Shown here: in pieces, positions 5,308 through 29,900 of the stretch | How the letters are laid out: each line of letters starts with the position of its first letter | Position numbering within the stretch: the first letter of the stretch is position 1 | From: Macrostomum lignano | Taxonomy: Eukaryota | Direction of reading: 5' to 3' | Length of the DNA stretch: 64,000 nucleotides | NCBI GenBank assembly: GCA_002269645.1 | Contig: NIVC01001888.1 | Span: forward strand, 124,001 to 188,000 | Position numbers and translations under genes: made by a program | Notes under the pieces: generated by a model | The model's database searches: none | Told to the model about the DNA's origin: nothing | Seen by the model: only the letters and a program-made list of their open reading frames with translations

Positions 5308-6610
5308 CTAATAGAGCTTCCCATTGTTTTCACCATCATCAGTTTTGTCGGCACCGGGATCTGATCCATGTCCGACAGTGTTGGACAGACGACGGGACCT
5401 GCGAAACACGTCGCTTCGCAGTAGGATGACAAAGAGGGCCGGATTGATGAGGTTCATGATGCACATTGCGCCGCCTAGCAGGCACAAGTAGGCGGTGTCT
5501 ATGCGGCTACGCTCGGCCACTATGCCGTAGGTGATGCGAGCTAAGCAGTAGCCGCGGCACAGCAAAAATGTGGCCAGATTAATCAGCGCATTTAACCGAT
5601 AGACTGGAGCCGTGAATGAGACGCGCAGCATTTGCATCAGTTTGCGCAGGTGAAGAAAAATTGAATTCACCTCGGTGAGCAAAGCCACAGCTGTGTAGCC
5701 AATGAACATCCGATTAGATAAGTTGTAGACAAATGTTGATATCACCTGTGAGTGTAGAAATGTGTTTATATTGATCTTTATCTATAGTAGCTTATGTCAT
5801 ACACCTATATCAATATAGATTTAGTCAATAATTAATTATTCTTTGTTAAAACAGTCAAACTGCTAAGTTTATTGTGCCTAAGATACTAAAAAGTTGCTTT
5901 CAATGGGGTAAAAATTTGCATTCTATAATGAGATCCCATTAAAAATGATAACAGTCTAAGCTTATACTTACAGCAATATGATGAAGACTTAGCTCCCATT
6001 CCTTGAGCAACTTTCCTTGAATTAGGAGGTCCATAAAGTCGTAGAAAAAGTATCCTAGAAATATATTTGTGAAGAAGAAATGCATATTTCTTAGATCAAA
6101 AATTTTAGTAATAGAAGTATAAATGAAAATATTCAAACCTGTTGATATGGCAACCATATAGTATGTAAATGGAGATATATGGTTTATCAAATCCTGCCAC
6201 ATCTCAGGATACAAGTAGAAACTACAATTAATAAAGAAATAGTGAGAGCAGACACTACTTAATATAAAAAACTTGTCTTTATGTTTTATGTTAATAAATC
6301 AGGATAATATTACATGTTATTTAAACACCCTCTTTAAAAGATCAATAAGAACCAATAATACTTACCAAGAAAGGTCCCATATGCCAATTATTAGAGCATG
6401 AATCCACGATAGAAGAAGATTTTTCCATTTCCATAACTCCTCTTGATTTTTCGCTCGATGTACAATGATTCTTGGGGGTCCAATCACGGTTAAAATTTGA
6501 TTTAGTAATCCGAAAATTGCAATAGTAAATAAAGCGGCACAAAATCCTCCCTTCACAGAAACTACACCAGCTTCGTTAGGAAAAGCATATTTGTAGAGTT
6601 CATTTTTCAT
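5308..6610 (-). CDS. TLC (TRAM/LAG1/CLN8) domain membrane protein, TLCD1/2-like; 4 exons (6610-6366, 6221-6139, 6054-5972, 5745-5308), 282 aa
   Basis: All three introns are GT-AG and phase-compatible (849 nt total). Motifs SWIHALI, GYFFYD, LHHIA and LLTEVNSIFLHLRKL are typical of the TLC domain. Confidence 0.85.
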
Positions 6611-7599: not shown

Positions 7600-7810
7600 T
7601 AAAAGATCGGCACGTACGTTTCCGCTCTGACTTGCACTGACTGCACGTGAGCGACAGGGCTGACCAACTTAAAAATATTACATTAACAAAAAGTGCAACT
7701 ACCTACAAAATACAGCTGTTTGACCTGGGCTGGGTGACTGGGATTGGTGCTGTTAATAGAGATTGATTCGCGTGTAAGACAATCACCTTAGCTTTGTTTG
7801 CACTGCCCAC
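7600..7810 (-). promoter_or_regulatory. Diverged paralog of the peptide-gene upstream region
   Basis: Reverse complement aligns by eye to 14210-14430: GCAGTGCAAACAAAG...AAGGTGATTGTCTTACACGC, CACCAATCCCAGT.ACCCAGCCCA.GTCAAACAG, CACGTG, ATCGGCACGT..TTCCGCTC. Confidence 0.6.
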
Positions 7811-8137
7811 AAGTATTAACGGCCTTGGATCGAGCTGGGTTGCTCCATCAACACAATGCGTATTCGTTAGGGGTGCTTAATTGTATTGGATTATCTGCCG
7901 GGAGGAGTGCGATTCTCAAGTTGTGGTGAAGTGATCCTCAGTTTGGAGCAGTGCTTATTTGACATTTATTTGACTGCCAATCAATGGAATGTAGCTGGAT
8001 CTGTAACTGGATGATTAATTTTTTGCCTTCTCATTGATTTCTACTTCAGAATATAAAAAAAGTGTTGGGAGAGTTATATATGTTGAAAATGCCAGTGCTT
8101 TGGTTTTGATCGACCGACTATCGGAAACACCAGCCGA

Positions 8138-8750
8138 GATCAGAAGCACCGGAGATAAGAAACGCAGAAGATCAGAAACACCGGAGATAAGAAACGCAGG
8201 AGATCAGAAACACCGGAGATAAGAAACGCAGGAGATCAGAAACACCGGAGATAAGAAACGCAGAAGATCAGAAGCACCGGAGATAAGAAACGCAGGAGAT
8301 CAGAAGCACCGGAGATAAGAAACGCAGAAGATCAGAAACACCGGAGATAAGAAACGCAGGAGATCAGAAACACCGGAGATAAGAAACGCAGAAGATCAGA
8401 AACACCGGAGATAAGAAACGCAGAAGATCAGAAACACCGGAGATAAGAAACGCAGGAGATCAGAAACACCGGAGATAAGAAACGCAGAAGATCAGAAACA
8501 CCGGAGATAAGAAACGCAGAAGATCAGAAACACCGGAGATAAGAAACGCAGGAGATCAGAAACACCGGAGATAAGAAACGCAGGAGATCAGAAACACCGG
8601 AGATAAGAAACGCAGAAGATCAGAAGCACCGGAGATAAGAAACGCAGGAGATCAGAAGCACCGCGGAGATAAGAAACGCAGGAGATCAGAAACACTGGAG
8701 ATAAGAAACGCAGGCGATCAGAAACACCGGGAGATCAGAAACACCGGAAA
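8138..8750. repeat. 32-bp minisatellite (GATCAGAAACACCGGAGATAAGAAACGCAG(A/G)A), about 19 copies
   Basis: Tandem units read directly. Confidence 0.95.
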
Positions 8751-9205
8751 CATTGAAGATCGTTTTCAGTATTGCCTGTGTAGATTTCTATGTATATTTT
8801 ATCTTCGGAAACTTGTTCACCAACCGCGGACTAAGCATTTCGACAAATTGCAAGCCGCTTCCATCAAGCTTGCCAAATTCTTCGAATGCAACGTCTTTCT
8901 ACGTTGATAGTTTCACATGCCAATCTCAAAACCCCAAACAAAATATCAATTATTACATTAAAAGCATGATGTTGTTGATTTCGATTTTCCATTAGTCTCT
9001 CATCTATAGCTACATGTACATGTAGCTTCAATGCTACAAAAGAATGTTGAGTCCGGAACGGTCATGCAGAGGTCGGCATGCCTTCATTTTGAATAAATAG
9101 GAGCTCCAATTGTTAAGCTTAAGCGTGTATTTGTGCTGCGTATTCGGGCACTTGGGCAGTCAGATCAGAGTCAAAGCCGGGGTTCTCCGAGCTCAGCTGC
9201 TCAGC

Positions 9206-9448
9206 TCAGAGCACCGCCTTGGCGACCTTGCCGGCCACGCGGATGGCCTTCCTCCAGCGGAAGCGCCTCCTCCTGCGCCACTTCTCGGCCGGCTGCAGGG
9301 CGCCGTCCTCGGACATGTCGGACTCCTCCAGGTTGGCCAGGGCCTCCAGCGCGTTCATCGCATCGGCGTCCTCGGCCTGCTCCGCGCTGGGAGCGGCGGC
9401 GGCCAGGGCCGTGCAGAGCAGAAGTCCGAGAGCGAGTTGCCACTTCAT
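9206..9448 (-). CDS. Secreted cationic peptide precursor (putative antimicrobial/cytolytic peptide), copy 1
   Basis: 80 aa, intronless. Hydrophobic signal peptide about 1-18, acidic propiece 19-55 (11 D/E), C-terminal KWRRRRRFRWRKAIRVAGKVAKAVL (8 R + 4 K). Strong GC3 bias. Confidence 0.85.
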   Translation of the reverse strand: MKWQLALGLLLCTALAAAAPSAEQAEDADAMNALEALANLEESDMSEDGALQPAEKWRRRRRFRWRKAIRVAGKVAKAVL

Positions 9449-10194
9449 GGTTGAGTTTGTTGCTGTGCGAGCTGATGAAGCTGAGAGTCTGTGACTACTA
9501 TTCCTGTTAATTGATCTCAGCCAGCTGCTTTAGGGGACGCATTTATGCAGCCGAAATCGGCACGTTTTTCCGCTCCGACTGCCTTCTGTTTGGACTGCTG
9601 GGCTGGCACGTGACAAGGGCTGACCTCTCCCAGATCGCACACTCTCTTTTCAATCATTTGAAACAAAGTTTCTGGTGGCAAATAGAACCGAATTCCTGTA
9701 TAATTACGAGTAATAAGGTTCTTGAACAAGCAACTTAATCTGTAAATTTACACTAGAGTTTTTTCGTTTAGTGTTACGTTTGTTTGAGCGGCTGTTGCAC
9801 TCTGGGGGTCTTGCTACTGCAAACACGGCCCTATTTGAATAGTCATCGAATTCACATTCTATTGAAATGCGCAATTTAATAGCTCTTGTAGCTTATGAGC
9901 ATCAGGAACTCGCGATGAAGAGAGCTGAGCTTCACGATGGAGAATCCATGATGAATACATTGAAATGATCGATAAAGCATAGGCGTAACAACATCCAAGA
10001 CTCTGGGGTTCCGTTTTAATTATTACTGATGATTGAATTCAGCATTTCTGATGTGAAATCCTTATACTTTTGTTTAATAAAAGATTTGTATAGAGAAGCC
10101 GTGTCTGAATTTCAAGGTTATCCACAAAGTCCCATATTAAATATGACTGATAACTGAGAATCATTTCCCCCAACAGCTAGATAATCATGCATTG

Positions 10195-10350
10195 CTCTTC
10201 AACTGAGAATCACTGCTCACAACTGCTCACAACTGAGCATCACTGCTTACACGTGAGAATCACTGCTCACAACTGAGAATCACTGCTCACAACTGAGAAT
10301 CACTGCTCACAACTGAGAATCACTGCTCACAACTGAGAATCACTGCTCTT
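10195..10350. repeat. 20-bp satellite CACTGCTCACAACTGAG(A/C)AT, short array (about 7 units)
   Basis: Tandem units read directly. Confidence 0.95.
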
Positions 10351-10405
10351 CACAGCTTCGGTACTCGTTAATAAGTATTAAGCATTTACCCTACCTGAGT
10401 CTTAA

Positions 10406-12561
10406 CCCTCCAAAGACTGATGGCACACGCCAGGCGTGCCATGGGTCTCATTTAACCATATACTGAGAATACATGTCTATGGCCTAGATAGTTTAGCATA
10501 AATATGACTTTTCGACATCCCCATAAGTTACGGATGGCATGCTGTGCGTACCATGTTTTTCGCAATTTTTCAACTATATTTCACTGCAAGTACAGGATAG
10601 ATAAGAATTCTTTAAAAACTTTAAAAAAGGACAACAACAGAACTAAGAACAGTTAGGTAAACAATATTTAATGCATCGATGAGGCATTTAGGAGGAGCGT
10701 TTTGAATTTCGTATTCTGAACGTAATAAGTTTTACACCGTACCACCAGTGCAACTACTGTGCTGCTGCAGTGTGCCAATTCTGAAGCACGGGACAGCACA
10801 CAGCCCGGGCTCTCCTGGGCAACCAGCGCATTCGAACACCGTTCTCTTGGCCACACCAAATTATTTTGTAAGTGCAATAAAAGTGCAATATGAATCGATA
10901 TGAAAACTGGCTTAAATACTAAGTTGCAAAAATTGACACCATTGCTGTAGCAGACTCTGCATCGCTTTGTCGGCCTTGCATTGGCATCTGTCGGCGGCAG
11001 CTTCGATGGCGCGTGCTGTGAGACGGCCCTGCGCTTCGATGTATTCAGACGTTTGCCCCGGCCTGTCTGCTCCATGAGAGTGCGGATCGCAGCTATCAAA
11101 AATTCAACGAATTTGATATCGCTTCCTTCTTGGCAGTTGCAGACCCAGGCACTGCGGACCAACTGCAGCAAAACGTGGAACCCGAGCTTCTGGTGCCATC
11201 TGTAGGTCTGTAGGCTCCCCCCACTGTAAGGCTGCAGTGCTGCATCAAGGCGATCAACGCCTCCCATGTTCTTATTGTACTGCAGCACCGAATTCGGCTT
11301 TAAAACTGACTCCTCTGCTCGGCCTTGGATCACTCGCCTCACTTCCGTGATTTCAGCAACACCGTGCGTGACTGACGGGTTGCACGGGCAGCAATTTCAG
11401 CTCATTCGGCACACCTCGATTGGGCCTCACCGTCCCAGTCAGTCAGTAAAGTACTGAGTTCCAGCAGAAACTGCGCCAGACGGAGCGATGTGAAACAGCT
11501 GTCACAGAAGACCTTGTGCCCCAGGTCCAGCAAATTTTTACTCAATTCAAGGACGATCTTCTCGCTCATCGACAAATTCCCGCAGTTTAATCCATCTCCA
11601 AACTTGTCGTTATCCTGCTTAGCAGCATGTACATGAAAGTTCCACAGAAAACATGTCAAAGCTTCTGTGTCCAGCAGTACACCTTGATGCCGAATCTGGC
11701 ACGCTTGTTGGGCATGAACGGCCGGAAAATGAGCCTGCCCTTGTACATGACCAGTTCTTCATCGACAGACACCTCTTGACTTGGGCTGTAATTTGCCTTG
11801 ACTTGGGCTGTAATTTGCTTGGCAAATATCGCGGGCAATGTTAAGAAACGGTCGAATCTTTTTCAAGGAGTCCTTGTTGGTTGACGGTGGTGCAGTCGTA
11901 AAATCGAAGGAATGATAAAATCTGCACAAACCGATCCCTTCCAAGGCAATGTTCTTTCTGCAAGTATTCGCCGCCGTAGAAGTCTCCCGTGGACCAGTAC
12001 ATGTGCATTTCGGGCTTCTTCACAAGACCCATGTACAGAACGATTGCTAGAGACTTCTTCACCTCATTGTCGGTACACGCTCTCCAAGTTGATAGCAAAT
12101 TGGGAAGAGCTCCGTCCTGAGCTTCAGCTGTTGAAGCTCCATGTCAGCTCGGGCGTTGGTCCAGATGCGAATGGCAGACACCAGATCAGCGGTGAGAAAG
12201 TGCTGCAGATAGAATTGCACCTGGGCCATTTTATATGTACCTTCAGGAGCTTGTGCTTGAATGTCCGGGTTCAGGCCAGACACAGCGAGGAATTCTCGTG
12301 GTTAAGCACAGCGAAACGTACCATTCCACAATCCAGTGATTAAGCAGCTGTGTCAGCGGGAAAAAAGTCGCGCTGAAGAGGATCTCAAGGCAACTGCTGC
12401 AAAATGCGGAGGATGGCATCGGAAAATGATGGAGCTACCTCCACCGGTGCATTACTGGCAACATATTCTCCTAGCTTGGTAAATTTCGAAACTGACTATT
12501 CAGCACGGTGGCTCCTTTGTTGCGTTGCGTTGCCTTGTTAGATGCTAGAAGATGCACGATG
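10406..12561 (-). mobile_element. piggyBac transposon, 5'-truncated, pseudogenised transposase (copy 1)
   Basis: TTAA (10402-10405) followed by CCCTCCAAAGACTGATGGCACACGCCAGGCGTGCC terminus. Transposase fragments carry SVDE, FCDSCFTS, NKNMGGVD (DDD triad) and a C-terminal RCRVC. Several frameshifts. Confidence 0.92.
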
Positions 12562-14105
12562 ACTGCTCACAACTGAGCATCAATGCTCACAACTGAGCAT
12601 CACTGCTCACAACTGAGCATCACTGCTCACAACTGAGCATCACTGCTCACAACTGAGCATCAATGCTCACACCTGAGAATCACTGCTCACAACTGAGCAT
12701 CACTGCTCACAACTGAGCATCACTGCTCACAACTGAGAATCACTGCTCACAACTGAGAATCACTGCTCACAACTGAGCATCACTGCTCACAACTGAGCAT
12801 CACTGCTCACAACTAAGCATCACTGCTCACAACTGAGCATCACTGCTCACAACTGAGAATCACTGCTCACACCTGAGAATCACTGCTCACAACTGAGCAT
12901 CACTGCTCACAACTGAGAATCACTGCTCACAACTGAGAATCACTGCTCACAACTGAGCATCACTGATCACAACTGAACATCACTGATCACAACTGAGCAT
13001 CACTGATCACAACTGAGCATCACTGATCACAACTGAGAATCACTGCTCACAACTGAGCATCACTGCTCACAACTGAGAATCACTGCTCACAACTGAGCAT
13101 CACTGCTCACAACTGAGCATCACTGCTCACACCTGAGAATCACTGCTCACACCTGAGAATCACTGCTCACACCTGAGAATCACTGCTCACACCTGAGAAT
13201 CACTGCTCACACCTGAGAATCACTGCTCACAACTAAGCATCACTGCTCACAACTGAGAATCACTGCTCACAACTGAGCATCACTGCTCACAACTGAGAAT
13301 CACTTCTCACAACTGAGAATCACTGCTCACAACTGAGCATCACTGCTCACACCTGAGAATCACTGCTCACAACTGAGCATCACTGCTCACAACTGAGCAT
13401 CACTGCTCACACCTGAGAATCACTGCTCACACCTGAGAATCACTGCTCACAACTGAGAATCACTGCTCACAACTGAGAATCACTGCTCACAACTGAGAAT
13501 CACTGCTCACAACTAAGCATCACTGCTCACAACTGAGAATCACTGCTCACAACTAAGCATCACTGCTCACAACTGAGAATCACTGCTCACAACTAAGCAT
13601 CACTGCTCACAACTAAGCATCACTGCTCACAACTAAGCATCACTGCTCACACCTGAGAATCACTGCTCACAACTAAGCATCACTGCTCACAACTGAGCAT
13701 CACTGCTCACAACTGAGCATCACTGCTCACACCTGAGAATCACTGCTCACACCTGAGCATCACTGCTCACACCTGAGCATCACTGCTCACACCTGAGAAT
13801 CACTGCTCACACCTGAGCATCACTGCTCACACCTGAGAATCACTGCTCACACCTGAGAATCACTGCTCACACCTGAGCATCACTGCTCACAACTGAGCAT
13901 CACTGCTCACACCTGAGAATCACTGCTCACACCTGAGAATCACTGCTCACAACTGAGAATCACTGCTCACACCTGAGAATCACTGCTGACACCTGAGAAT
14001 CACTGCTCACAACTGAGAATCACTGCTCACAACTGAGAATCACTGCTCACAGCTGAGAATCACTGCTCACAACTGAGCATCACTGCTCACACCTGAGCAT
14101 CACTC
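12562..14105. repeat. 20-bp satellite CACTGCTCACA(A/C)CTGAG(A/C)AT, about 77 units
   Basis: Tandem units read directly. Confidence 0.97.
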
Positions 14106-14371
14106 CTTTCAGCAGATAATCTAGGAGTACTACATGCAATTATAAGCAGCACTAACGACTAGGCGTTCTGTTGATTATGTAGGTCAACACAGCTACAAGG
14201 GTTCATGCTTGAATGCAGTGCAAACAAAGGCTATTAAGGTGATTGTCTTACACGCCAACTCATCCTAACTGAGAGCACCAATCCCAGTGACCCAGCCCAA
14301 GTCAAACAGTATTTCGGAGGCAGTTGCAAGTTTTTGTTGCTGTGATCTTTTTAAGTAGGTAAGTCTGGCGC

Positions 14372-14475
14372 TCACGTGCCAGCCCGGCAGTCCAAACAGA
14401 AGGCAGTCGGAGCGGAAAAACGTGCCGATTTCGGCTGCATAAATGCGTCGCCTAAAGCAGCTGGCTGAGATCAAT
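14372..14475 (+). promoter_or_regulatory. Putative proximal promoter of peptide gene copy 2 (shared with copies 1 and 3)
   Basis: CACGTG E-box at about 14373, GCGGAAAAAC, and TATA-like CATAAAT at about 14438-14444, roughly 95 bp upstream of the ATG. Conserved in all three copies. Confidence 0.45.
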
Positions 14476-14536
14476 TAACAGGAAAAGTAGTCACAGACTC
14501 TCAGCTTCATCAGCTCGCACAGCAACAGACTCAACC

Positions 14537-14779
14537 ATGAAGTGGCAACTCGCTCTCGGACTTCTGCTCTGCACGGCCCTGGCCGCCGCCGCTCCCAGCG
14601 CGGAGCAGGCCGAGGACGCCGATGCGATGAACGCGCTGGAGGCCCTGGCCAACCTGGAGGAGTCCGACATGTCCGAGGACGGCGCCCTGCAGCCGGCCGA
14701 GAAGTGGCGCAGGAGGAGGCGCTTCCGCTGGAGGAAGGCCATCCGCGTGGCCGGCAAGGTCGCCAAGGCGGTGCTCTGA
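14537..14779 (+). CDS. Secreted cationic peptide precursor, copy 2 (in palindrome spacer)
   Basis: 243-bp CDS, same 80-aa translation as copies 1 and 3; nucleotide-identical to copy 3. Confidence 0.85.
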   Translation: MKWQLALGLLLCTALAAAAPSAEQAEDADAMNALEALANLEESDMSEDGALQPAEKWRRRRRFRWRKAIRVAGKVAKAVL

Positions 14780-15015
14780 GCTGAGCAGCTGAGCTCGGAG
14801 AACCCCGGCTTTGACTCTGATCTGACTGCCCAAGTGCCCGAATACGCAGCACAAATACACGCTTAAGCTTAACAATTGGAGCTCCTATTTATTCAAAATG
14901 AAGGCATGCCGACCTCTGCATAACCGTTCCGGACTCAACATTCTTTTGTAGCATTGAGGCTAGCTGGGAATGCAAAACAGAAGCATCATGTTTAGGCTTG
15001 ATTAGATATGAATTT

Positions 15016-16395
15016 GATTCTCAGTTGTGAGCAGTGATGCTCAGTTGTGAGCAGTGATTCTCAGTTGTGAGCAGTGATGCTCAGGTGTGAGCAGTGATGC
15101 TTAGTTGTGAGCAGTGATGCTTAGTTGTGAGCAGTGATGCTTAGTTGTGAGCAGTGATGCTCAGTTGTGAGCAGTGATTCTCAGTTGTGAGCAGTGATGC
15201 TCAGGTGTGAGCAGTGATTCTCAGGTGTGAGCAGTGATTCTCAGGTGTGAGCAGTGATTCTCAGTTGTGAGCAGTGATGCTCAGTTGTGAGCAGTGATTC
15301 TCAGTTGTGAGCAGTGATGCTCAGTTGTGAGCAGTGATTCTCAGTTGTGATCAGTGATGCTCAGTTGTGATCAGTGATGCTCAGTTGTGAGCAGTGATTC
15401 TCAGTTGTGAGCAGTGATTCTCAGTTGTGAGCAGTGATGCTCAGGTGTGAGCAGTGATGCTCAGTTGTGAGCAGTGATGCTCAGTTGTGAGCAGTGATTC
15501 TCAGGTGTGAGCAGTGATTCTCAGTTGTGAGCAGTGATGCTTAGTTGTGAGCAGTGATGCTTAGTTGTGAGCAGTGATTCTCAGTTGTGAGCAGTGATGC
15601 TCAGTTGTGAGCAGTGATTCTCAGTTGTGAGCAGTGATGCTCAGTTGTGAGCAGTGATGCTTAGTTGTGAGCAGTGATGCTTAGTTGTGAGCAGTGATGC
15701 TCAGTTGTGAGCAGTGATGCTCAGTTGTGAGCAGTGATGCTCAGGTGTGAGCAGTGATTCTCAGGTGTGAGCAGTGATTCTCAGGTGTGAGCAGTGATGC
15801 TCAGTTGTGAGCAGTGATTCTCAGGTGTGAGCAGTGATGCTCAGTTGTGAGCAGTGATGCTCAGTTGTGAGCAGTGATTCTCAGTTGTGAGCAGTGATGC
15901 TCAGTTGTGAGCAGTGATTCTCAGTTGTGATCAGTGATGCTCAGTTGTGATCAGTGATGCTCAGTTGTGATCAGTGATGCTCAGTTGTGATCAGTGATGC
16001 TCAGTTGTGAGCAGTGATTCTCAGTTGTGAGCAGTGATTCTCAGTTGTGAGCAGTGATGCTCAGGTGTGAGCAGTGATGCTCAGTTGTGAGCAGTGATGC
16101 TTAGTTGTGAGCAGCGATGCTCAGTTGTGAGCAGTGATGCTTAGTTGTGAGCAGTGATGCTCAGTTGTGAGCAGTGATGCTCAGTTGTGAGCAGTGATTC
16201 TCAGTTGTGAGCAGTGATTCTCAGTTGTGAGCAGTGATGCTCAGTTGTGAGCAGTGATGCTCAGTTGTGAGCAGTGATTCTCAGGTGTGAGCATTGATGC
16301 TCAGTTGTGAGCAGTGATGCTCAGTTGTGAGCAGTGATGCTCAGTTGTGAGCAGTGATGCTCAGTTGTGAGCATTGATGCTCAGTTGTGAGCAGT
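15016..16395. repeat. 20-bp satellite in reverse orientation (CTCAG(T/G)TGTGAGCAGTGAT(G/T)), about 69 units
   Basis: Reverse complement of the 12562-14105 array unit. Confidence 0.97.
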
Positions 16396-18551
16396 CATCG
16401 TGCATCTTCTAGCATCTAACAAGGCAACGCAACGCAACAAAGGAGCCACCGTGCTGAATAGTCAGTTTCGAAATTTACCAAGCTAGGAGAATATGTTGCC
16501 AGTAATGCACCGGTGGAGGTAGCTCCATCATTTTCCGATGCCATCCTCCGCATTTTGCAGCAGTTGCCTTGAGATCCTCTTCAGCGCGACTTTTTTCCCG
16601 CTGACACAGCTGCTTAATCACTGGATTGTGGAATGGTACGTTTCGCTGTGCTTAACCACGAGAATTCCTCGCTGTGTCTGGCCTGAACCCGGACATTCAA
16701 GCACAAGCTCCTGAAGGTACATATAAAATGGCCCAGGTGCAATTCTATCTGCAGCACTTTCTCACCGCTGATCTGGTGTCTGCCATTCGCATCTGGACCA
16801 ACGCCCGAGCTGACATGGAGCTTCAACAGCTGAAGCTCAGGACGGAGCTCTTCCCAATTTGCTATCAACTTGGAGAGCGTGTACCGACAATGAGGTGAAG
16901 AAGTCTCTAGCAATCGTTCTGTACATGGGTCTTGTGAAGAAGCCCGAAATGCACATGTACTGGTCCACGGGAGACTTCTACGGCGGCGAATACTTGCAGA
17001 AAGAACATTGCCTTGGAAGGGATCGGTTTGTGCAGATTTTATCATTCCTTCGATTTTACGACTGCACCACCGTCAACCAACAAGGACTCCTTGAAAAAGA
17101 TTCGACCGTTTCTTAACATTGCCCGCGATATTTGCCAAGCAAATTACAGCCCAAGTCAAGGCAAATTACAGCCCAAGTCAAGAGGTGTCTGTCGATGAAG
17201 AACTGGTCATGTACAAGGGCAGGCTCATTTTCCGGCCGTTCATGCCCAACAAGCGTGCCAGATTCGGCATCAAGGTGTACTGCTGGACACAGAAGCTTTG
17301 ACATGTTTTCTGTGGAACTTTCATGTACATGCTGCTAAGCAGGATAACGACAAGTTTGGAGATGGATTAAACTGCGGGAATTTGTCGATGAGCGAGAAGA
17401 TCGTCCTTGAATTGAGTAAAAATTTGCTGGACCTGGGGCACAAGGTCTTCTGTGACAGCTGTTTCACATCGCTCCGTCTGGCGCAGTTTCTGCTGGAACT
17501 CAGTACTTTACTGACTGACTGGGACGGTGAGGCCCAATCGAGGTGTGCCGAATGAGCTGAAATTGCTGCCCGTGCAACCCGTCAGTCACGCACGGTGTTG
17601 CTGAAATCACGGAAGTGAGGCGAGTGATCCAAGGCCGAGCAGAGGAGTCAGTTTTAAAGCCGAATTCGGTGCTGCAGTACAATAAGAACATGGGAGGCGT
17701 TGATCGCCTTGATGCAGCACTGCAGCCTTACAGTGGGGGGAGCCTACAGACCTACAGATGGCACCAGAAGCTCGGGTTCCACGTTTTGCTGCAGTTGGTC
17801 CGCAGTGCCTGGGTCTGCAACTGCCAAGAAGGAAGCGATATCAAATTCGTTGAATTTTTGATAGCTGCGATCCGCACTCTCATGGAGCAGACAGGCCGGG
17901 GCAAACGTCTGAATACATCGAAGCGCAGGGCCGTCTCACAGCACGCGCCATCGAAGCTGCCGCCGACAGATGCCAATGCAAGGCCGACAAAGCGATGCAG
18001 AGTCTGCTACAGCAATGGTGTCAATTTTTGCAACTTAGTATTTAAGCCAGTTTTCATATCGATTCATATTGCACTTTTATTGCACTTACAAAATAATTTG
18101 GTGTGGCCAAGAGAACGGTGTTCGAATGCGCTGGTTGCCCAGGAGAGCCCGGGCTGTGTGCTGTCCCGTGCTTCAGAATTGGCACACTGCAGCAGCACAG
18201 TAGTTGCACTGGTGGTACGGTGTAAAACTTATTACGTTCAGAATACGAAATTCAAAACGCTCCTCCTAAATGCCTCATCGATGCATTAAATATTGTTTAC
18301 CTAACTGTTCTTAGTTCTGTTGTTGTCCTTTTTTAAAGTTTTTAAAGAATTCTTATCTATCCTGTACTTGCAGTGAAATATAGTTGAAAAATTGCGAAAA
18401 ACATGGTACGCACAGCATGCCATCCGTAACTTATGGGGATGTCGAAAAGTCATATTTATGCTAAACTATCTAGGCCATAGACATGTATTCTCAGTATATG
18501 GTTAAATGAGACCCATGGCACGCCTGGCGTGTGCCATCAGTCTTTGGAGGG
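16396..18551 (+). mobile_element. piggyBac transposon, 5'-truncated, pseudogenised transposase (copy 2)
   Basis: Ends ...CAGTCTTTGGAGGG followed by TTAA (18552-18555). Same DDD motifs as copy 1. A 22-bp tandem duplication (17139-17160 / 17161-17182) causes a frameshift shared with copy 1. Confidence 0.92.
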
Positions 18552-18607
18552 TTAAGACTCAGGTAGGGTAAATGCTTAATACTTATTAACGAGTACCGAA
18601 GCTGTGA

Positions 18608-19062
18608 AGAGCAGTGATTCTCAGTTGTGAGCAGTGATTCTCAGTTGTGAGCAGTGATTCTCAGTTGTGAGCAGTGATTCTCAGTTATGAGCAGTGATTC
18701 TCAGGTGTGAGCAGTGATTCTCAGTTGTGAGCAGTGATGCTCAGTTGTGAGCAGTGATTCTCAGTTGTGAGCAGTGATTCTCAGTTATGAGCAGTGATTC
18801 TCAGGTGTGAGCAGTGATTCTCAGTTGTGAGCAGTGATTCTCAGTTATGAGCAGTGATTCTCAGGTGTGAGCAGTGATTCTCAGTTGTGAGCAGTGATGC
18901 TCAGTTGTGAGCAGTGATTCTCAGTTGTGAGCAGTGATTCTCAGTTGTGAGCAGTGATTCTCAGTTGTGAGCAGTGATTCTCACGTGTAAGCAGTGATTC
19001 TCAGTTGTGAGCAGTGATGCTCAGTTGTGAGCAGTTGTGAGCAGTGATTCTCAGTTGAAGAG
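18608..19062. repeat. 20-bp satellite, reverse orientation, about 22 units
   Basis: Tandem units read directly; mirror of the 10195-10350 array but about 300 bp longer. Confidence 0.95.
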
Positions 19063-19808
19063 CAATGCATGATTATCTAGCTGTTGGGGGAAATGATTCT
19101 CAGTTATCAGTCATATTTAATATGGGACTTTGTGGATAACCTTGAAATTCAGACACGGCTTCTCTATACAAATCTTTTATTAAACAAAAGTATAAGGATT
19201 TCACATCAGAAATGCTGAATTCAATCATCAGTAATAATTAAAACGGAACCCCAGAGTCTTGGATGTTGTTACGCCTATGCTTTATCGATCATTTCAATGT
19301 ATTCATCATGGATTCTCCATCGTGAAGCTCAGCTCTCTTCATCGCGAGTTCCTGATGCTCATAAGCTACAAGAGCTATTAAATTGCGCATTTCAATAGAA
19401 TGTGAATTCGATGACTATTCAAATAGGGCCGTGTTTGCAGTAGCAAGACCCCCAGAGTGCAACAGCCGCTCAAACAAACGTAACACTAAACGAAAAAACT
19501 CTAGTGTAAATTTACAGATTAAGTTGCTTGTTCAAGAACCTTATTACTCGTAATTATACAGGAATTCGGTTCTATTTGCCACCAGAAACTTTGTTTCAAA
19601 TGATTGAAAAGAGAGTGTGCGATCTGGGAGAGGTCAGCCCTTGTCACGTGCCAGCCCAGCAGTCCAAACAGAAGGCAGTCGGAGCGGAAAAACGTGCCGA
19701 TTTCGGCTGCATAAATGCGTCCCCTAAAGCAGCTGGCTGAGATCAATTAACAGGAATAGTAGTCACAGACTCTCAGCTTCATCAGCTCGCACAGCAACAA
19801 ACTCAACC

Positions 19809-20051
19809 ATGAAGTGGCAACTCGCTCTCGGACTTCTGCTCTGCACGGCCCTGGCCGCCGCCGCTCCCAGCGCGGAGCAGGCCGAGGACGCCGATGCGAT
19901 GAACGCGCTGGAGGCCCTGGCCAACCTGGAGGAGTCCGACATGTCCGAGGACGGCGCCCTGCAGCCGGCCGAGAAGTGGCGCAGGAGGAGGCGCTTCCGC
20001 TGGAGGAAGGCCATCCGCGTGGCCGGCAAGGTCGCCAAGGCGGTGCTCTGA
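19809..20051 (+). CDS. Secreted cationic peptide precursor, copy 3
   Basis: Identical 80-aa translation to copies 1 and 2. Confidence 0.85.
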   Translation: MKWQLALGLLLCTALAAAAPSAEQAEDADAMNALEALANLEESDMSEDGALQPAEKWRRRRRFRWRKAIRVAGKVAKAVL

Positions 20052-21132
20052 GCTGAGCAGCTGAGCTCGGAGAACCCCGGCTTTGACTCTGATCTGACTG
20101 CCCAAGTGCCCGAATACGCAGCACAAATACACGCTTAAGCTTAACAATTGGAGCTCCTATTTATTCAAAATGAAGGCATGCCGACCTCTGCATGACCGTT
20201 CCGGACTCAACATTCTTTTGTAGCATTGAGGCTAGCTGGGAATGCAAAACAGAAGCATCATGTTTAGGCTTGATTAGATATGAATTTTTTTGGTGATGAT
20301 TCACAAAGACTAAATATAAAGTTTTTACTGGTGGTTCATCAGTGTACTATACAGTTAGATAATTACATCACAAAAGTTGTGCTCGCAGCCTACTACTGCA
20401 CACGGCTCTGTTAGTAGATACAGTTGGCAAAAGCTTGTGCACAATAATGGGAGAGGTGATATTAACAAATGAGTGACGCACATTTCTAATTATTGATATT
20501 AATGATATAGGCATACAAAATTGGCATTAGGGAAGCATGACGCATACATTTATTAATAAATTCAAAAACCTAGCATTCAAGTAAATTTCTATCGTTCTTG
20601 CGACTGAAGCTTAAAATACACGCAGGAGACAACTGCAACACTTTATTAGATAGTAACAGACAAATTTTCGGTTACATTGTCCTGGAATAACACTGGCTGG
20701 AAACTGGAATAATATAAAAGTACGCACAATCAATCAGCTTAAACGTGCATCATTTTAACTAGCAGTAAGTGTTATTAAATGCTTCTATCCGATTTAAAAT
20801 ATGATTGAGCTCTTTCCCGATGAAATCGCTAAGAAGCGTCCCAGTCACTTGCATCGTCCCAAGAGTTTTTGTCTGCGACTTTGAAACGATGCTGGGGCGA
20901 CAGAGTCGCACTTTATAACAGCTACATTTAGTCTATTTGAGTTAGTGAAAAAGTTAAACGCTAACACTTTTAGACGACTTTTTGGCGACTTTTATTACGA
21001 TGCTAAAACTCTATAGTCGCTATAGTCACTAGCGACTTGTTTGCAATGACTCTTTAGCGATTCTCTATCAAAATTAACTACTACCTAGATACAAAAGTAC
21101 ACGATAAACTTTAATTTAACGGACATTCAGGA

Positions 21133-22738
21133 CTATCCGAGAGGTGCCTGAACAGCCCGCACAATGGACCGCTCGCAGCAGGGACAATGCGGCGGCGGGC
21201 CAGACTGTCTCCTAATAAAATTCGAGCAGATCTCGCACAGGCGGATAGCGTGAGTCTCCACTCGAGCAGCCGCCAATGCGCAGACCGTATCGTACTTGGC
21301 GGTACACACGGGCTGATTGATCCGGCAGAACTGGCACAGATCTAGCAGGCTGAATGCGGGCTCGCGGAAGCGGAGAAACAGGCAGCTGAACTGCGTTGAT
21401 GCCCAGCTGATTGCGCGGACCATTCGGCGGAAGGCGTCGTCCGGGTTGGTCTCGCTTGGCACGATGCCAAACCGGCTAGCGAGAGGGCGCGGGGAGGGGC
21501 CAGGGAGTTTCTTAGAAAAAGTCACTCATGTTTGAGACAGCAGACTTTGGTATGAACCTAGTCTTTGAGAGAGAGTCATCTGCTGGGGTTCGTCTTTAGG
21601 GACGAAGTCATGGATGAGGTCATAGATGAGGTCACGGATAAGATCATAGATGATGCCACGGATAAGATCATAGATGAGGTCACGGATAAGATCATAGATG
21701 ATGCCACGGATAAGATCATAGATGATGCCACGGATAAGATCATAGATGATGCCATGGATAAGATCATAGGTGAGGTCACGGATAAGATCATAGATGATGC
21801 CACGGATAAGATCATAGATGATACCATGGATAAGATCATAGATGATGCCACGGATAAGATCATAGATGATGCCATGGATAAGATCATAGGTGAGGTCACG
21901 GATAAGATCATAGATGAGGTCACGGATAAGATCATAGATGATACCATGGATAAGATCATAGATGATGCCACGGATAAGATCATAGATGATGCCATGGATA
22001 AGATCATAGGTGAGGTCACGGATAAGATCATAGATGATGCCACGGATAAGATCATAGATGATGCCACGGATAAGATCATAGATGAGGTCACGGATAAGAT
22101 CATAGATGATGTCACGGATAAGATCATAGATGAGGTCACGGATAAGATCATAGATGAGGCCACGGATAAGATCATAGATAATGTCATCACAGCCTAAGAA
22201 AGCAGTGTCGCCGCTCTCACCGGTACAGGAACAGCACATCGTCCACAGTGATGTTCTGCCTGCAGCGATGGTCGGAGTGTCGGCTGAAGTGCTCATTCAA
22301 TCTGGCAGCGAATCGCTGGGGCGTGTCGGCTAGCCAGTGCTCGGGGCCGCCAGTCAATCTCATCAGCCGATGCCAGCGCTCTAGCAGGCCAATCAAATCG
22401 TGACAGGTCAGGTCGCCGCCTCTGGCAGATTTGAAAAACTCGAACAGCAGATGAGAGTTGGGATTACTAGCGTTGCCAGGCGGTAACCAGGCTCGCCAGC
22501 CGTCTGGCCCGCGGCAAGTGGGATCGGGGAACAGCTGTCTAGTCGATTGACTGGCGCGCAAGTGGACGTAAAACTCGGCGCTAGTTGCGTCCGGCCGGCC
22601 GGACAAAAAGCTGGCCAGCTCGTCTACTAAGGTGACGCTGTCGGACACGGCGCGGGGTGAGGGCGGAACGGCTAGGGGACTAACAGGATTGCTGACGGAT
22701 GAAGCTCTGCTGCTATCGCGCCCCGCCGCATATTGCAT
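21133..22738 (-). CDS. Candidate two-exon protein (22738-22221, 21475-21133; 286 aa) with C-terminal RING-like Cys cluster
   Basis: Phase-2 donor (TACCG|GTGAGA) and acceptor (CCCTCTCGCTAG|C) join the two ORFs in frame. C-terminus reads CQFC...C...H...CEIC...CPCC. Confidence 0.5.
21605..22185. repeat. 24-bp minisatellite (GATGAGGTCACGGATAAGATCATA variants), about 24 copies, intronic
   Basis: Tandem units read directly; produces the spurious repeat ORFs in the track. Confidence 0.95.
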
Positions 22739-26968: not shown

Positions 26969-29900
26969 TGTAATAATAATAATAATAATAATAGTTACGC
27001 CCCACGCCAGCCACAGAAGTGGCCAAAAGGGGGGAGCGTAAAATCGCGCGTTTCAGAGCTAGGTCTCTAATGTGCTTCACACCGGCCGCCTGGCTGGGTG
27101 CTCACGCATCTTCAAAAAGGCGGTCGACGTAGCGGGCTGATCGTCCCTGGCCACGCCTGCGCGGTCCCTGCGGGGTCCACAGCAGGACGTCCTGCAGCGG
27201 CTCTGGGCAGTAGGCTTCGGCCCGGATGACATGTCCGGCCAGCCGCAGGCGCCGCTGACTCAGCAGGGCAGAAGGCCGCGTCAGGCCTGTGCGCTTGTAC
27301 AGGGACTCGGTTGTCTCGCTGCCAGGGCCGCGGCGGGCGCCGAAAGCGGCGCGGACTAGGGCCGCATGTGCCGCGTCGAGCTGCGCCTCAAGCGCCCCGG
27401 TCAGCGTCCAGGTCTCAGCATTGTACAGCAGGGCGGTCTCAACAACCGCCTGGAACAGCTGGGACCTGGCGTCGTCGGACAGGGCCTCGGAGAGCAGCAC
27501 CGCCCGCACAGATCTTAAGGCAGCCCAGGCCTTGCCGCGCCGTCTCGCTAGGTCGTCGCCGAAGTCCGGCACCAGTCCGCCGAGGTAGACGAACTGAAGG
27601 CACTTCGGGAGCGACGTCCCGGGGCCGTCGCCGTCTCGAAGTCGAATCTCGGCGGGTAAATCATGCGGCACCGTCAGCACCTCGGTCTTCCTGGCGTTGA
27701 TGACGAGACCGACCCTCGCCGCCGCTGCAGTCAAGCCGTCCAGCAGCCGTTGGGCGCCTTCGGCCGTCGAAGACAGCAGGGCGAGGTCGTCCGCGTAGCC
27801 AAGGACAGACAGTTTCTTTTCCGGGTGCCGTCTACTGGTGCGCCTTTGCAGCAGAAAGCCGTCCTCTGATGTCGGCAGGCCGGTCCTGAGCACCCAGTCC
27901 ATCACCAGCACGAAGAGAAAGGGCGCCAGAGTGTCACCCTGTAGAACTCCGGACGTCGTGCTAAACAGGTCCGACGGTCCGTCTGGCGTCGCTACCGCGG
28001 CGGTGGTGTCCTGATACAGCGCCATGATGGCGGAGATCAGCTGCTGCGGCACGTTGTAGGCACGGAGAACGTGAGGCAGCGCGCCGCGCGTCACCGAGTC
28101 GAAGGCCTTGAGGAAGTCAACAAAGATGACGATAAGGCTTGACTGGTGGATGCGCGCCTCCTCGATGATGCGGCGGAGGGCCAGGATCTGTGTCACCGTA
28201 CCGCGACGGGGGCGGAACCCGTTCTGCTCGTACCGCAGGAACTAGTCCAGCACGGGCTGTAACCGTGCTAATAGCAACGGTTGAACAGCTTCGCGGTACA
28301 GGACATGAGCGAGATTCCACGATGCTCCTCCTTCCGTGTAGTGCCCGGCTTCTTCGGGATGCCGACGATGTTGGCCTGGGTCCACTCGTGGGGCGCGGGG
28401 CCTCCCGCCAGGACGCCGTTCATCACGCGGGCCACCTCAGTGGCAACCCTTGTGACTCGCAGCGCCTCGACGGGGACCTCGTCCGGGCCGGGGGCGCGGC
28501 CTCCCGGAGCCCTGCGGGCGAATTCCACGACGTCGGTGCTGGTCACAGGACGGGTGTCGAAGTCCTCCTGCCGCGGCAGCGCCACCTCGGGGGGCAGCGG
28601 CATCTCGTTCGGCAGAGTCGGCGGCGGCGAAGAAGGTGCGCAGCTCGTTTCTGCGCTCTTCGGCCGTGTCGCCAGCCAGGTTGAGCGCCGTCTTCTTTTT
28701 GCGACCGGTTAGGGCGTTCACGACCGGCCAGACGACCCTATTCTGCCGTTCAGGCCCAACGGAGGCGACTGCCCTGATTGCGTCGTCAACAGCGGCTTGC
28801 TGTCGACTAGCGTAGGCGTCTGCCAGGGCTTTCTCGGCATCGGATGTCGGTCGCCTGGCTCGTCGCAGCTGCTCGACTGTGCGGCGGGCCTCTCGGACCT
28901 CCGGGTCGCTCGCCCAAACCGGAAGTTGCCGTGACGCGGGCTCCATAAGCGGCAGAGTTTTAGCAGCGGCAGTGGTGATGGCTGAGCTGATTGTGGAGTA
29001 GTCTGGCGCCTGCGCAGATCCCAGGGCAGTCGCGAAGGTGTACGCAAAGTTGCTGAGGGTACCAGGGTCTTGCAAGGCGCGGAAAAATAGTCTCCTAGGG
29101 CGTTTTGGTGGCCTGTACAGCGGGTCAGAGAGCCTCAGGTCGCAGTAGAGAAGGCGATGGTCGGACCGGACAGCCAGGGGTTCCACTGTGTCACAGTTCT
29201 GCAGCCGACTGCGTTCGCGGTGTCGAACCAGCACGTGGTCAAGCTGTGCCAGGCGGGTCGTGGCGAGTCGGCCTCGCGCATTCTGTTTCCTTCGCTTGCA
29301 GCCGGCGAATGTTGCCAGCCGGTTGGGTGGTTTGCGGAAGCGCGTGTTGGCCGACACCAGGTCGAGCCTCGCCATCAGGTCCGCTAGCGCGGCGGTGTTG
29401 GCGTTCTGGCGTGGCGACACAAACGGGCAGCGCTCGGACCGCGGTGCCACGGCGTTGAGGTCACCAAGCACCACCACAGTGTCGCGGTGCGCCACCGACT
29501 CGAGCTGCTCGGACAGGAGCTCGAAGAACTCCTGTGCCTCCTGCTGATGGGCAGCCGTGGGAGCGTACGCACAGAACAGCCGCGCATTGCAGCGGCGCAG
29601 CCTCACGTCCACGCGCAGCAGTCGGGCTGACAAGCTGACGCAGCAGACGCTCTCGCGTAGCCGTGGTCCGACGAGCGCGCCGACTCCTCCGTGGCCTCTG
29701 CTGTCCGCTGACGTGTAGTGCAGCGTCCAGCCGGCCCCCAGGTCTTCACGGTGAAGTCCAGACTCAGCAGTGATTGACAACTCCTGCAGCATGACGAGGT
29801 CTAGCCGCAGGTCAGATGCCAGCAGTGCGAGCATGCCCCTTCTCCAGGCGGACTTCAGTGTTCGGCAGTTAAAGGTGGCTAGTCTTAGAGCGCGGTTTGT

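Follow-up and report, generated by a model that had tools for sequence, protein, structure and literature searches.

The palindromes P1–P8 of the human Y chromosome are ampliconic and are maintained by arm-to-arm gene conversion. Replication can also generate inverted gains: in ODIRA, template switching at inverted repeats produces inverted gains and palindromic junctions. At the human MECP2 and PLP1 loci, the rearrangements designated as DUP-TRP/INV-DUP arise when the template is switched repeatedly between inverted low-copy repeats (PMC11293582; PMC4352052). The published model for inverted gains mediated by inverted repeats (IRs) has two kinds of junction, namely a chimeric repeat and a second junction that is either blunt or carries 1–9 bp of microhomology (PMC11293582).

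Here we describe an 11.2-kb palindrome in the flatworm Macrostomum lignano, in which copies of a small peptide gene lie at both tips and in the spacer. The palindrome is present in the assembled sequence; it presumably also exists in the animal. It resembles the primate sex-chromosome palindromes (e.g., human P1–P8) in its near-identical arms, unique spacer, and multi-copy genes in the arms. However, the arms of P1–P8 span 9 kb to 1.45 Mb and have been conserved across species over millions of years, whereas those of the present locus are ~5 kb long and the homeolog lacks the second arm.

The analysed stretch of 64,000 nucleotides (the window) belongs to contig NIVC01001888.1 of the M. lignano assembly Mlig_3_7, which was made with Canu from PacBio reads. 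The comparison locus, designated as L001, lies on the homeologous contig NIVC01001363.1. Both loci come from one Pilon-polished assembly, based on a single set of PacBio CLR reads; in this draft, REAPR-error-free bases amount to only 64%, and chimeric scaffolds make up 36% of the assembly length. The subgenomes of M. lignano are 1.4–2.4% divergent from each other. Differences between homeologs are dominated by large indels (PMC10733133). Look-ups of the exact protein found no independent assembly and gave matches only on two Mlig_3_7 contigs; a further candidate locus, L003, was rejected as independent because it is the window's own contig. Likewise, when the neighbouring TLC-domain gene was used to look for a third homeolog, none was found; the only matches were the L001 contig and P0003, a 47%-identical protein on a 2.7-kb ENA contig.

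Palindrome anatomy and arm identity

The inverted arms pair 9023–10348 with 18909–20234 (7 mismatches) and 10212–13942 with 15015–18745 (69 mismatches), and all of the mismatches fall within a 20-bp satellite except for 9027/20230, which marks the end of true homology. The non-satellite DNA of the arms (9028–10221 and 10349–12561; 3,407 bp) contains neither a mismatch nor an indel between the arms. Between them lies a 911-bp spacer (14105–15015), which holds peptide copy 2. The interior designated as X (satellites, piggyBac, and upstream region) is present twice and the unique part S once, while repeat A alone has three copies and 58 bp of the right flank is duplicated (Table 1). Positions 14143–14379, which lie mostly in S, are 78% similar, in inverted orientation, to 7879–7643.

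Most of what an earlier, sequence-only reading of this DNA had claimed about the anatomy was borne out: the inverted repeat is near-perfect, the frameshifted piggyBac ORFs are mirrored identically in both arms, the satellite arrays differ between the arms in length and variant order, and there are three peptide copies, whose 80-aa ORFs are identical. The palindrome ends, which it had set at 9023 and 20234, needed correction to 9028 and 20229, the last 4 bp being a chance match. It also overlooked that copies 2 and 3 form direct repeats of 644 bp (14372–15015 = 19644–20287) that reach 58 bp past the palindrome tip.

Table 1. Features of the palindrome and its right flank, in window coordinates
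Feature	Position	Strand	Remarks
A1, left copy of the ancestral 586-bp inverted repeat, with peptide copy 1	9028..9613	(-)	also in L001 at 9788-10371
Peptide copy 1 CDS	9206-9448, including stop	(-)	promoter-like motif 9541-9571
U, unique region upstream of copy 1, left arm	9614..10221	(-)	0 mismatches to 19036-19643
Short 20-bp satellite, left arm, 6.3 units	10222..10348	(+)	contracted relative to right-arm and L001 arrays
Decayed piggyBac relic, left arm	10349..12561	(-)	PF13843 fragments in at least 3 different frames; single TTAA + TIR at 10402-10419
Long 20-bp satellite, left arm, 77 units	12562..14104	(+)	hairpin-type units
S, unique spacer part	14105..14371	(+)	present in homeolog too
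A2, original right copy of the ancestral inverted repeat, with peptide copy 2	14372..14957	(+)	G at 14386, shared with L001 right copy
Peptide copy 2 CDS	14537-14779	(+)	promoter-like motif 14414-14444
Duplicated 58 bp of right flank	14958..15015	(+)	identical to 20230-20287; ends at junction 2 (15015/15016)
Long satellite, right arm, 69 units	15016..16395	(-)	28 piggyBac-proximal units nearly match left arm
piggyBac relic, inverted duplicate	16396..18608	(+)	identical to 10349-12561; TIR 18538-18555
Short satellite, right arm, 21.4 units	18609..19035	(-)	unit order as in L001
U', inverted duplicate of upstream region	19036..19643	(+)	matches U without mismatch
A3, recombinant third copy (junction 1)	19644..20229	(+)	left-copy alleles, then right flank from 20230
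Peptide copy 3 CDS	19809-20051	(+)	promoter-like motif 19686-19716
Parental copy of the 58-bp right-flank segment	20230..20287	(+)	continues collinear with homeolog right flank

The satellite unit is a hairpin with a 6-bp stem, TGCTCA-CAAC-TGAGCA, with a folding energy of -4.9 kcal/mol per unit (z = -4.2 to -6.8). The short array has 6 units in the left arm and 21 in the right, the long array 77 and 69, respectively, and the distal units of the long array are ordered differently in the two arms. In its short array, the right arm has a unit order that is shared with L001 and absent from the left arm, which indicates that the right arm was not assembled from reads of the left arm. Across the distal two-thirds of the long arrays, the arms differ far more than expected for a brand-new copy; this counts against a recent duplication and calls for either fast array turnover or assembly noise.

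Within each arm, three ORF fragments match DDE_Tnp_1_7 (PF13843; E 3e-10 to 6e-6) over profile positions 31–230; they lie in three different frames, and the transposase ORF is therefore not intact. One TTAACCCTCCAAAGACTG end was found per arm, and a second TTAA-flanked TIR was not found. The insertion is older than the homeolog split, since L001 also carries the copy. By these features, the piggyBac copy is a relic, not an active element.

The peptide gene copies and their family

The peptide begins with a hydrophobic stretch (residues 1–19), followed by residues 20–55 with a net charge of -11 and residues 56–80 with a net charge of +12, a putative signal, propiece, and cationic C-terminus, respectively, as judged from sequence. 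In an alignment of seven family members, the prepro region is conserved and the mature region is hypervariable, and the five members clustered at one locus (L006), which, like L005, L007, and L008, was examined through repeat, ORF, and DNA searches, have different C-termini. The family has a putative basic processing site, and the short cationic C-terminal peptide often ends in Gly. The peptide belongs to an M. lignano family that is clustered and uncharacterised, and whose predicted precursor architecture is AMP-like. A Pfam search of the peptide matched no family, a literature search on the gene ids of the family yielded no papers, and one on Macrostomum antimicrobial peptides yielded nothing relevant. 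The hydrophobic moment of the putative mature peptide, calculated as a measure of helical amphipathicity, was 0.55 and not significant against shuffled sequences (p ~0.08), and thus we make no structural claim.

Amphibian skin peptide precursors of the dermaseptin/temporin type are laid out as signal, acidic propiece, and cationic peptide. The flatworm family shares with them the signal, the acidic propiece, the basic site, the variable cationic C-terminus, and the gene clusters. However, the two have no sequence homology, the flatworm family has no Pfam match, and the likeness is an analogy of architecture only. The suggestion that the palindrome raises peptide dosage is trivially correct, as this homeolog has three copies versus two, but selection for dosage is without evidence. 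In M. lignano, a model organism for regeneration, the locus also draws attention to an unannotated clustered family of predicted cationic secreted peptides and to faulty gene models at these loci.

Homeolog comparison and junctions

L001 is collinear with the window over the left flank, A1, X, S, A2, and the right flank, and it lacks 15016–19643. The 586-bp A1/A2 inverted pair is present in both. The two loci differ at 124 of 6,892 positions (1.8%), and in the arm-equivalent DNA at 82 of 3,600 (~2.3%) together with 19 indel events. The identity of the arms (100% over 3,407 bp), with a 911-bp spacer between them, is thus far above that to the homeolog (1.8–2.3% divergence). Given the absence of mismatches between the arms and the homeolog divergence, the duplication is estimated to be no older than ~4% of that divergence (Poisson bound). 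A right arm that is in fact another subgenome assembled in reverse was also considered and was rejected, because the subgenomes differ by 1.4–2.4% and the arms at none of the 3,407 positions.

L001 is the sole comparable locus, and its lack of a right arm fits a young duplication or a later deletion between A2 and A3. Regarding polarity, a gain in the subgenome of this contig, rather than a loss in the homeolog, is the probable direction, as judged from two loci only. A deletion in the homeolog between the A2 and A3 direct repeats would yield the same pair of structures. The sequence-only reading had offered either a very recent inverted amplification or a palindrome kept homogeneous by arm-to-arm gene conversion; the former is better supported by the structure of L001 and the identity of the arms, and conversion between the arms, although it may have occurred, is not needed.

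The two junctions of the right arm are of different kinds. At junction 2 (15015/15016, at about 139,015 of the contig), ATATGAATTT is joined directly to GATTCTCAG with at most 1 nt of microhomology, and the 58 bp of right flank meet the hairpin-forming satellite. Junction 1 is A3 itself, a recombinant repeat that carries the left-copy (A1) alleles at all five informative sites (19658, 19722, 19757, 19800, and 20194) and turns into A2/right-flank sequence from 20230. Copy 2 differs at five sites (14386G, 14450G, 14485A, 14528G, and 14922A), which had been described as SNPs private to copy 2. The sites do differ, but their privacy does not hold: when compared with the homeolog, copy 2 is derived at 14922 only, while at 14450, 14485, and 14528 the derived state is common to copies 1 and 3, and 14386/19658 is an old difference between left and right copies that is shared with L001. 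These five sites are the key evidence for the recombinant origin of copy 3.

Origin of the palindrome and relation to known systems

The best reading, to which we give somewhat better than even credence, is a replicative inverted duplication of 5.3 kb with two template switches that used the pre-existing 586-bp inverted repeat. The ancestral state would have been two head-to-head peptide genes, constituting the inverted repeat A1/A2, ~4.8 kb apart, with a dead piggyBac element inside hairpin-forming 20-bp satellite in the interval. In the subgenome of this contig, a single replication-based event would then have copied the interior in reverse. Reading from left to right, the nascent strand would have left its template 58 bp past A2, at 15015, and re-primed on the opposite strand, within the long satellite, where no more than 1 nt of microhomology is seen. 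Reverse copying would have proceeded through the satellite, piggyBac, the short satellite, and the upstream region into A1, where A1/A2 homology would have allowed a second switch back to the original template and on into the right flank. The product, A1-X-S-A2-58bp followed by X'-A3-58bp-flank, would be the 11.2-kb palindrome together with a third promoter-bearing gene copy. The event is taken to have been replicative, and the fork may have stalled at the satellite. Both junction types match those of the IR-mediated model (PMC11293582), and this is counted in favour of the present reading, as are the hairpin fold of the satellite unit and the predominance of large indels among the homeolog differences.

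A misassembly, which we regard as unlikely, would leave the real locus homeolog-like (A1-X-S-A2-flank): a chimeric PacBio insert would have created 15015/15016, and Canu would have reached the right flank by crossing over within repeat A, whose copies are 99% identical. The draft is based on error-prone CLR reads and its reported error and chimerism are high, the microhomology at junction 2 is as small as in a blunt ligation chimera, and the other join sits inside a repeat that raw reads cannot resolve. However, Canu trims unsupported chimeric junctions, and the unequal satellites, together with the homeolog-type units that the right short array has kept and the left arm has lost, indicate that the right arm derived from different molecules; an artefact would thus need two independent errors as well as satellite-length polymorphism. 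A fold-back from a missed adapter would mirror S and A2 about one point, and neither is mirrored. A simple PacBio fold-back read was rejected on this topology, as the right arm begins within the satellite and runs out into the correct right flank. The concern that fold-back chimeras can mimic such a structure is thereby answered for simple fold-backs, leaving a chimeric read combined with a repeat mis-join as the form that an artefact could take.

We consider it distinctly unlikely that the palindrome is old and kept uniform by arm-to-arm gene conversion, having predated the subgenome split and lost one arm in the homeolog via the 644-bp A2/A3 direct repeats. Such a deletion would restore the structure of L001 exactly, and A1 resembles A2 about as closely as each resembles its orthologue, hinting at some concerted evolution; strongly diverged satellites beside identical unique DNA also fit. 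However, minisatellite arrays turn over much more rapidly than point substitutions build up, so that this last combination is expected for a young duplicate too. Moreover, three processes (formation, sustained conversion, and deletion) would be invoked instead of one, and the five A2-specific differences have survived only 4.7 kb away. The exact observed order and the recombinant A3 would also be obtained in two steps, in which crossing-over between A1 and A2 inverts X-S in one chromatid or allele and a non-homologous unequal exchange then joins 15015 to the satellite. The 586-bp inverted repeats, at 99% identity, are good substrates for inversion, but this scheme demands two rare events and the coexistence of two orientations in an inbred line, and no sequence trace sets it apart from the one-step model; we think it very unlikely. 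Aberrant piggyBac transposition has next to no probability. Each arm does hold a piggyBac relic, but no breakpoint coincides with an end of the element (TIR at 10402/18555, junctions at 15015 and inside A). A single TIR is left, the frame of the transposase has at least three breaks, and the insertion predates the homeolog split. A rearrangement mediated by this dead and old element is effectively refuted by the breakpoint positions.

The event is an ordinary kind of structural variant. If real, the locus provides a natural before/after pair, in which one subgenome has the ancestral inverted gene pair and the other the derived inverted duplication, whose two breakpoints can be read at single-base resolution. 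Template switching mediated by repeats, which has been investigated chiefly in yeast and at human disease loci, would then also shape a neopolyploid flatworm genome and add gene copies to it. If it is an artefact, the locus usefully illustrates how a misassembly can imitate a biologically plausible rearrangement. We give little credence to the broader proposal that this is a stable, conversion-homogenised palindrome rather than a single accident, and that inverted duplication from head-to-head pairs is the regular route by which the fast-evolving, AMP-like peptide family both expands and is maintained. Were it true, the locus would be an autosomal invertebrate counterpart of sex-chromosome ampliconic palindromes, and the mirrored piggyBac relics could additionally be a source of hairpin RNA.

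With regard to template switching, the product expected from ODIRA is an inverted triplication that contains an origin and is bounded by short inverted repeats in two pairs, whereas the present locus has one long pair, a non-homologous junction, and no triplication. With DUP-TRP/INV-DUP, the locus shares a prior pair of inverted repeats, a chimeric repeat as junction 1, a blunt or ~1-nt junction 2, an extra inverted copy in cis, and a short duplication where replication resumed. The two differ in scale (kilobases versus hundreds of kilobases) and in setting, with the palindrome fixed in a subgenome of an inbred flatworm line and DUP-TRP/INV-DUP arising de novo in a patient. Unlike in DUP-TRP/INV-DUP, reverse synthesis would have ended between the repeats, and thus X is only duplicated (inverted), none of the unique DNA is triplicated, and the repeat rises from two copies to three. 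Lacking a triplicated segment flanked by duplications, the locus is not a canonical member of this class, but it is DUP-TRP/INV-DUP-like in its working.

Anatomy of the palindrome

Self-comparison revealed two collinear inverted blocks, in which 9023-10348 pairs with 18909-20234 and 10212-13942 pairs with 15015-18745. Together with three identical ORFs and a piggyBac relic in each arm, this bears out the sequence-only reading of an 11.2-kb near-perfect palindrome at 9023-20234, with the peptide gene at both tips and in the spacer. Its further claim that only satellite arrays differ between the arms holds for 69 of 69 mismatches in the inner block and 6 of 7 in the outer block, but not for one outer mismatch. 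Non-satellite arm DNA (3,407 bp) exhibits no mismatches or indels between the arms. The piggyBac relic has PF13843 matches in three ORF pieces, each in a different frame, and a single surviving end per arm (TTAA-CCCTCCAAAGACTG). The spacer and right-tip copies are 644-bp direct repeats (14372-15015 and 19644-20287), which extend 58 bp past the palindrome tip, a feature missed by the sequence-only reading. In a five-way alignment with the homeolog, the sequence beyond A1, the left copy of the ancestral repeat unit A, is of left-flank type, and that beyond A2 (spacer) and A3 (right tip) is of right-flank type. Part of the unique spacer segment (14143-14379) is 78% similar, inverted, to 7643-7879, 1.2 kb past the left tip, and could reflect an older duplication or a dispersed repeat.

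The 20-bp satellite unit contains a self-complementary hairpin, TGCTCA-CAAC-TGAGCA (6-bp stem, 4-nt loop; -4.9 kcal/mol per unit, z = -4.2 to -6.8); in the right register, arrays of opposite orientation are therefore ~80% alike. The hairpin is a plausible fork-stalling site. No further occurrence of this satellite was found in the window outside the four arrays, and no other large palindrome was found in the window. A separate, unrelated inverted pair (56855-57244 and 58206-58595; 390 bp, 99% identity, ~960 bp apart), with 26-bp satellite arrays on both outer sides (56404-56846 and 58603-59011), may be a foldback-type element.

Features of the palindrome locus, its surroundings and related loci
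Feature	Position	Strand	Remarks
80-aa ORFs, mutually identical (n = 3)	9206-9448; 14537-14779; 19809-20051	-; +; +	
Repeat unit A, ancestral inverted repeat	A1 9028-9613; A2 14372-14957; A3 19644-20229		586 bp; five-way alignment with homeolog
20-bp satellite arrays	12562-14104; 15016-16395; 10222-10348; 18609-19035		
Promoter-like motif, window	9541-9571; 14414-14444; 19686-19716	-; +; +	
Promoter-like motif, L001 (homeologous locus)	10299-10329; 14192-14222	-; +	
Promoter-like motif, other loci	L008, four sites; L009, 394-423		
Peptide-family loci outside the homeologous pair	L004, L006, L007, L008, L009		
TLC-domain gene flanking the palindrome locus	5308-6610	-	PF03798
LINE-like retroelement	27102-29834	-	endonuclease ORF (PF03372), reverse transcriptase ORF (PF00078)
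Minisatellite arrays, examples	1315-1935; 8136-8742; 21612-22183; 30961-31622; 34539-35805; 37338-37980; 62028-63202		

The homeologous locus and the two junctions

The 80-aa peptide was found on two contigs of GCA_002269645.1 (Mlig_3_7) by exact protein look-up, and part of the length of the deposited protein BOX15_Mlig026085g2 is 100% identical to it. One hit, L003 (NIVC01001888.1, reversed), is the window's own contig and counts as no independent evidence; its left tip is identical in sequence to that of the window, and copies 1 and 2 lie 5,089 bp apart, ATG to ATG, in both. From the left flank across A1, upstream region, short satellite, piggyBac, long satellite, unique spacer segment and A2, the homeologous locus L001 (NIVC01001363.1) is collinear with the window; it then continues directly into the window's right flank from 20288 onward; in the collinear alignment, a counterpart of 15016-19643 is absent. 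The two loci would form a before/after pair.

Substitutions between them amount to 124 of 6,892 positions (1.8%) overall and, in arm-equivalent DNA, to 82 of 3,600 positions plus 19 indel events. This matches the published divergence among the three subgenomes S, L1 and L2 (SNPs ~1.4-2.4%, indels far more; PMC10733133); a third subgenome copy of the locus was not found. Given the zero differences between the arms, the arm duplication, or its last homogenisation, dates to at most ~4% of the homeolog divergence (Poisson upper limit of 3 events against ~78 expected).

Junction 2 lies between 15015 and 15016, where ...GATTAGATATGAATTT passes into satellite (GATTCTCAGTTG...); at the parental site, between 20287 and 20288, this sequence instead runs into TTTTGGTGATG..., and at most 1 nt is shared at the join. 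Junction 1 lies inside A3, which matches A1 at each of the five A1/A2-distinguishing sites (19658, 19722, 19757, 19800 and 20194) and from 20230 on is identical to A2 plus right flank; A3 is therefore a recombinant, a left-copy body joined to the right flank. Polarisation by L001 modifies the earlier view of five SNPs private to copy 2: 14922 is derived in A2 alone, but at 14450, 14485 and 14528 the derived state is that of A1/A3, and 14386 (G in A2 and the L001 right copy; A in A1, A3 and the L001 left copy) represents an old left/right difference.

The peptide family and its surroundings

In an exhaustive profile-free search, relatives of the peptide were found in M. lignano only, save one Logan contig of unknown origin. 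Family members share a signal-like N-terminus (MKWQLALGLLLCAALAVA), an acidic propiece, a KK or EK site and a hypervariable, Arg-rich, often Gly-terminated C-terminus; in the window peptide, the propiece has a net charge of -11 and the C-terminal 25 residues +12. This architecture suggests a possible antimicrobial role. The genes occur in clusters of mixed orientation: five are in L006 (- - + + -), one head-to-head pair lying within a 453-nt, 87% inverted repeat, and L004 has two direct copies. Annotated members of this uncharacterised multigene family are BOX15_Mlig010792g3, 020420g1, 001660g1, 015087g2 and 015779g1.

In 3/3 window and 2/2 L001 copies, the ATG is preceded at ~95 bp by a conserved promoter-like motif pair, GGAAAAAYGTG-N-GCATAAAT; in family members more generally the distance is ~95-120 bp, and a distant member on a Logan contig also has the motif. 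Across the five copies at the homeologous pair of loci, variable sites number 1 in 239 bp of CDS, a synonymous one, versus 11 in 337 bp in the rest of unit A (Fisher p = 0.018). Family, motif and CDS variability support a gene that is real and constrained. The proposal that the amplification raises peptide dosage stands as a count, three copies versus two at this homeolog; no indication of selection for the extra copy was found.

Deposited gene models at these loci are chimeric, likely owing to multi-mapping RNA-seq reads. In P0001 (127 aa, L001 10001-14554), an antisense ORF from the left copy is joined by splicing to the right copy, and a 103-aa model in L003 (window ~14537 to beyond 19448) appears to run from the copy 2 ATG across the entire right arm towards copy 3. 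The homeologous TLC-domain gene, BOX15_Mlig025937g1, is on the L001 contig. Minisatellite arrays are very dense window-wide (units 14-32 bp, 0.5-1.5 kb each), which fits the reported repeat-rich genome, and some give long spurious ORFs in several frames.

Probable origin of the palindrome

Mlig_3_7 was assembled from PacBio CLR reads with Canu 1.4 and polished with Pilon, with 64% error-free bases by REAPR (PMC5730564), and chimeric scaffolds make up 36% of assembly length (PMC10733133). In such a draft, a chimeric insert producing junction 2, a mis-join inside A and satellite-length polymorphism could together mimic the locus, which we consider unlikely. Because the unique spacer segment and A2 are unmirrored, the topology excludes a missed-adapter fold-back read; a right arm from another subgenome is ruled out by 0% arm difference versus 1.4-2.4% between subgenomes. 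Assembly of the right arm from left-arm reads is ruled out by its short array, which has 21 units versus 6 and an order, A-B-[TTACACG]-B-B-B-A-B, common to L001 and lost from the left arm; the long arrays (69 and 77 units) also argue against it, 28 piggyBac-adjoining units being near-identical but distal portions scrambled. Of all the observations, this strong distal divergence is the hardest to square with a very young duplicate; it needs fast array turnover, plausible for minisatellites, or consensus noise. The two structures would likewise result if the palindrome were old and kept by gene conversion and the homeolog had lost an arm through a deletion between A2 and A3, which are direct repeats; this history requires more events and leaves the A2-specific differences unconverted, and we judge it improbable.

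Between very recent inverted amplification and a conversion-maintained palindrome, the two origins offered by the sequence-only reading, we favour the former, refined, pending read-level confirmation, as a recent inverted duplication that was mediated by an inverted repeat already present and whose two breakpoints are resolved. With X the left-arm interval, X' its inverted duplicate, S the unique spacer segment and f58 the 58 bp of right flank, the structure A1-X-S-A2-f58/X'-A3-f58-flank would be expected from two template switches during replication, one non-homologous, from flank to satellite, and the other through A1/A2 homology. The same product would also arise in two steps, first an inversion by crossing-over between A1 and A2 and then a non-homologous unequal exchange, and the sequence does not distinguish this route from the one-step model.

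The event would be of a known kind in a new organism. The proposed scheme is the same as that of human DUP-TRP/INV-DUP, in which junction 1 is a chimeric inverted repeat and junction 2 is blunt or has 1-9-bp microhomology (PMC11293582). Unlike in that class, reversed synthesis here would have ended within the interval between the repeats, so that no unique segment is triplicated; the locus thus works like DUP-TRP/INV-DUP and is not a canonical member. ODIRA is a related scheme (PMC10766186).
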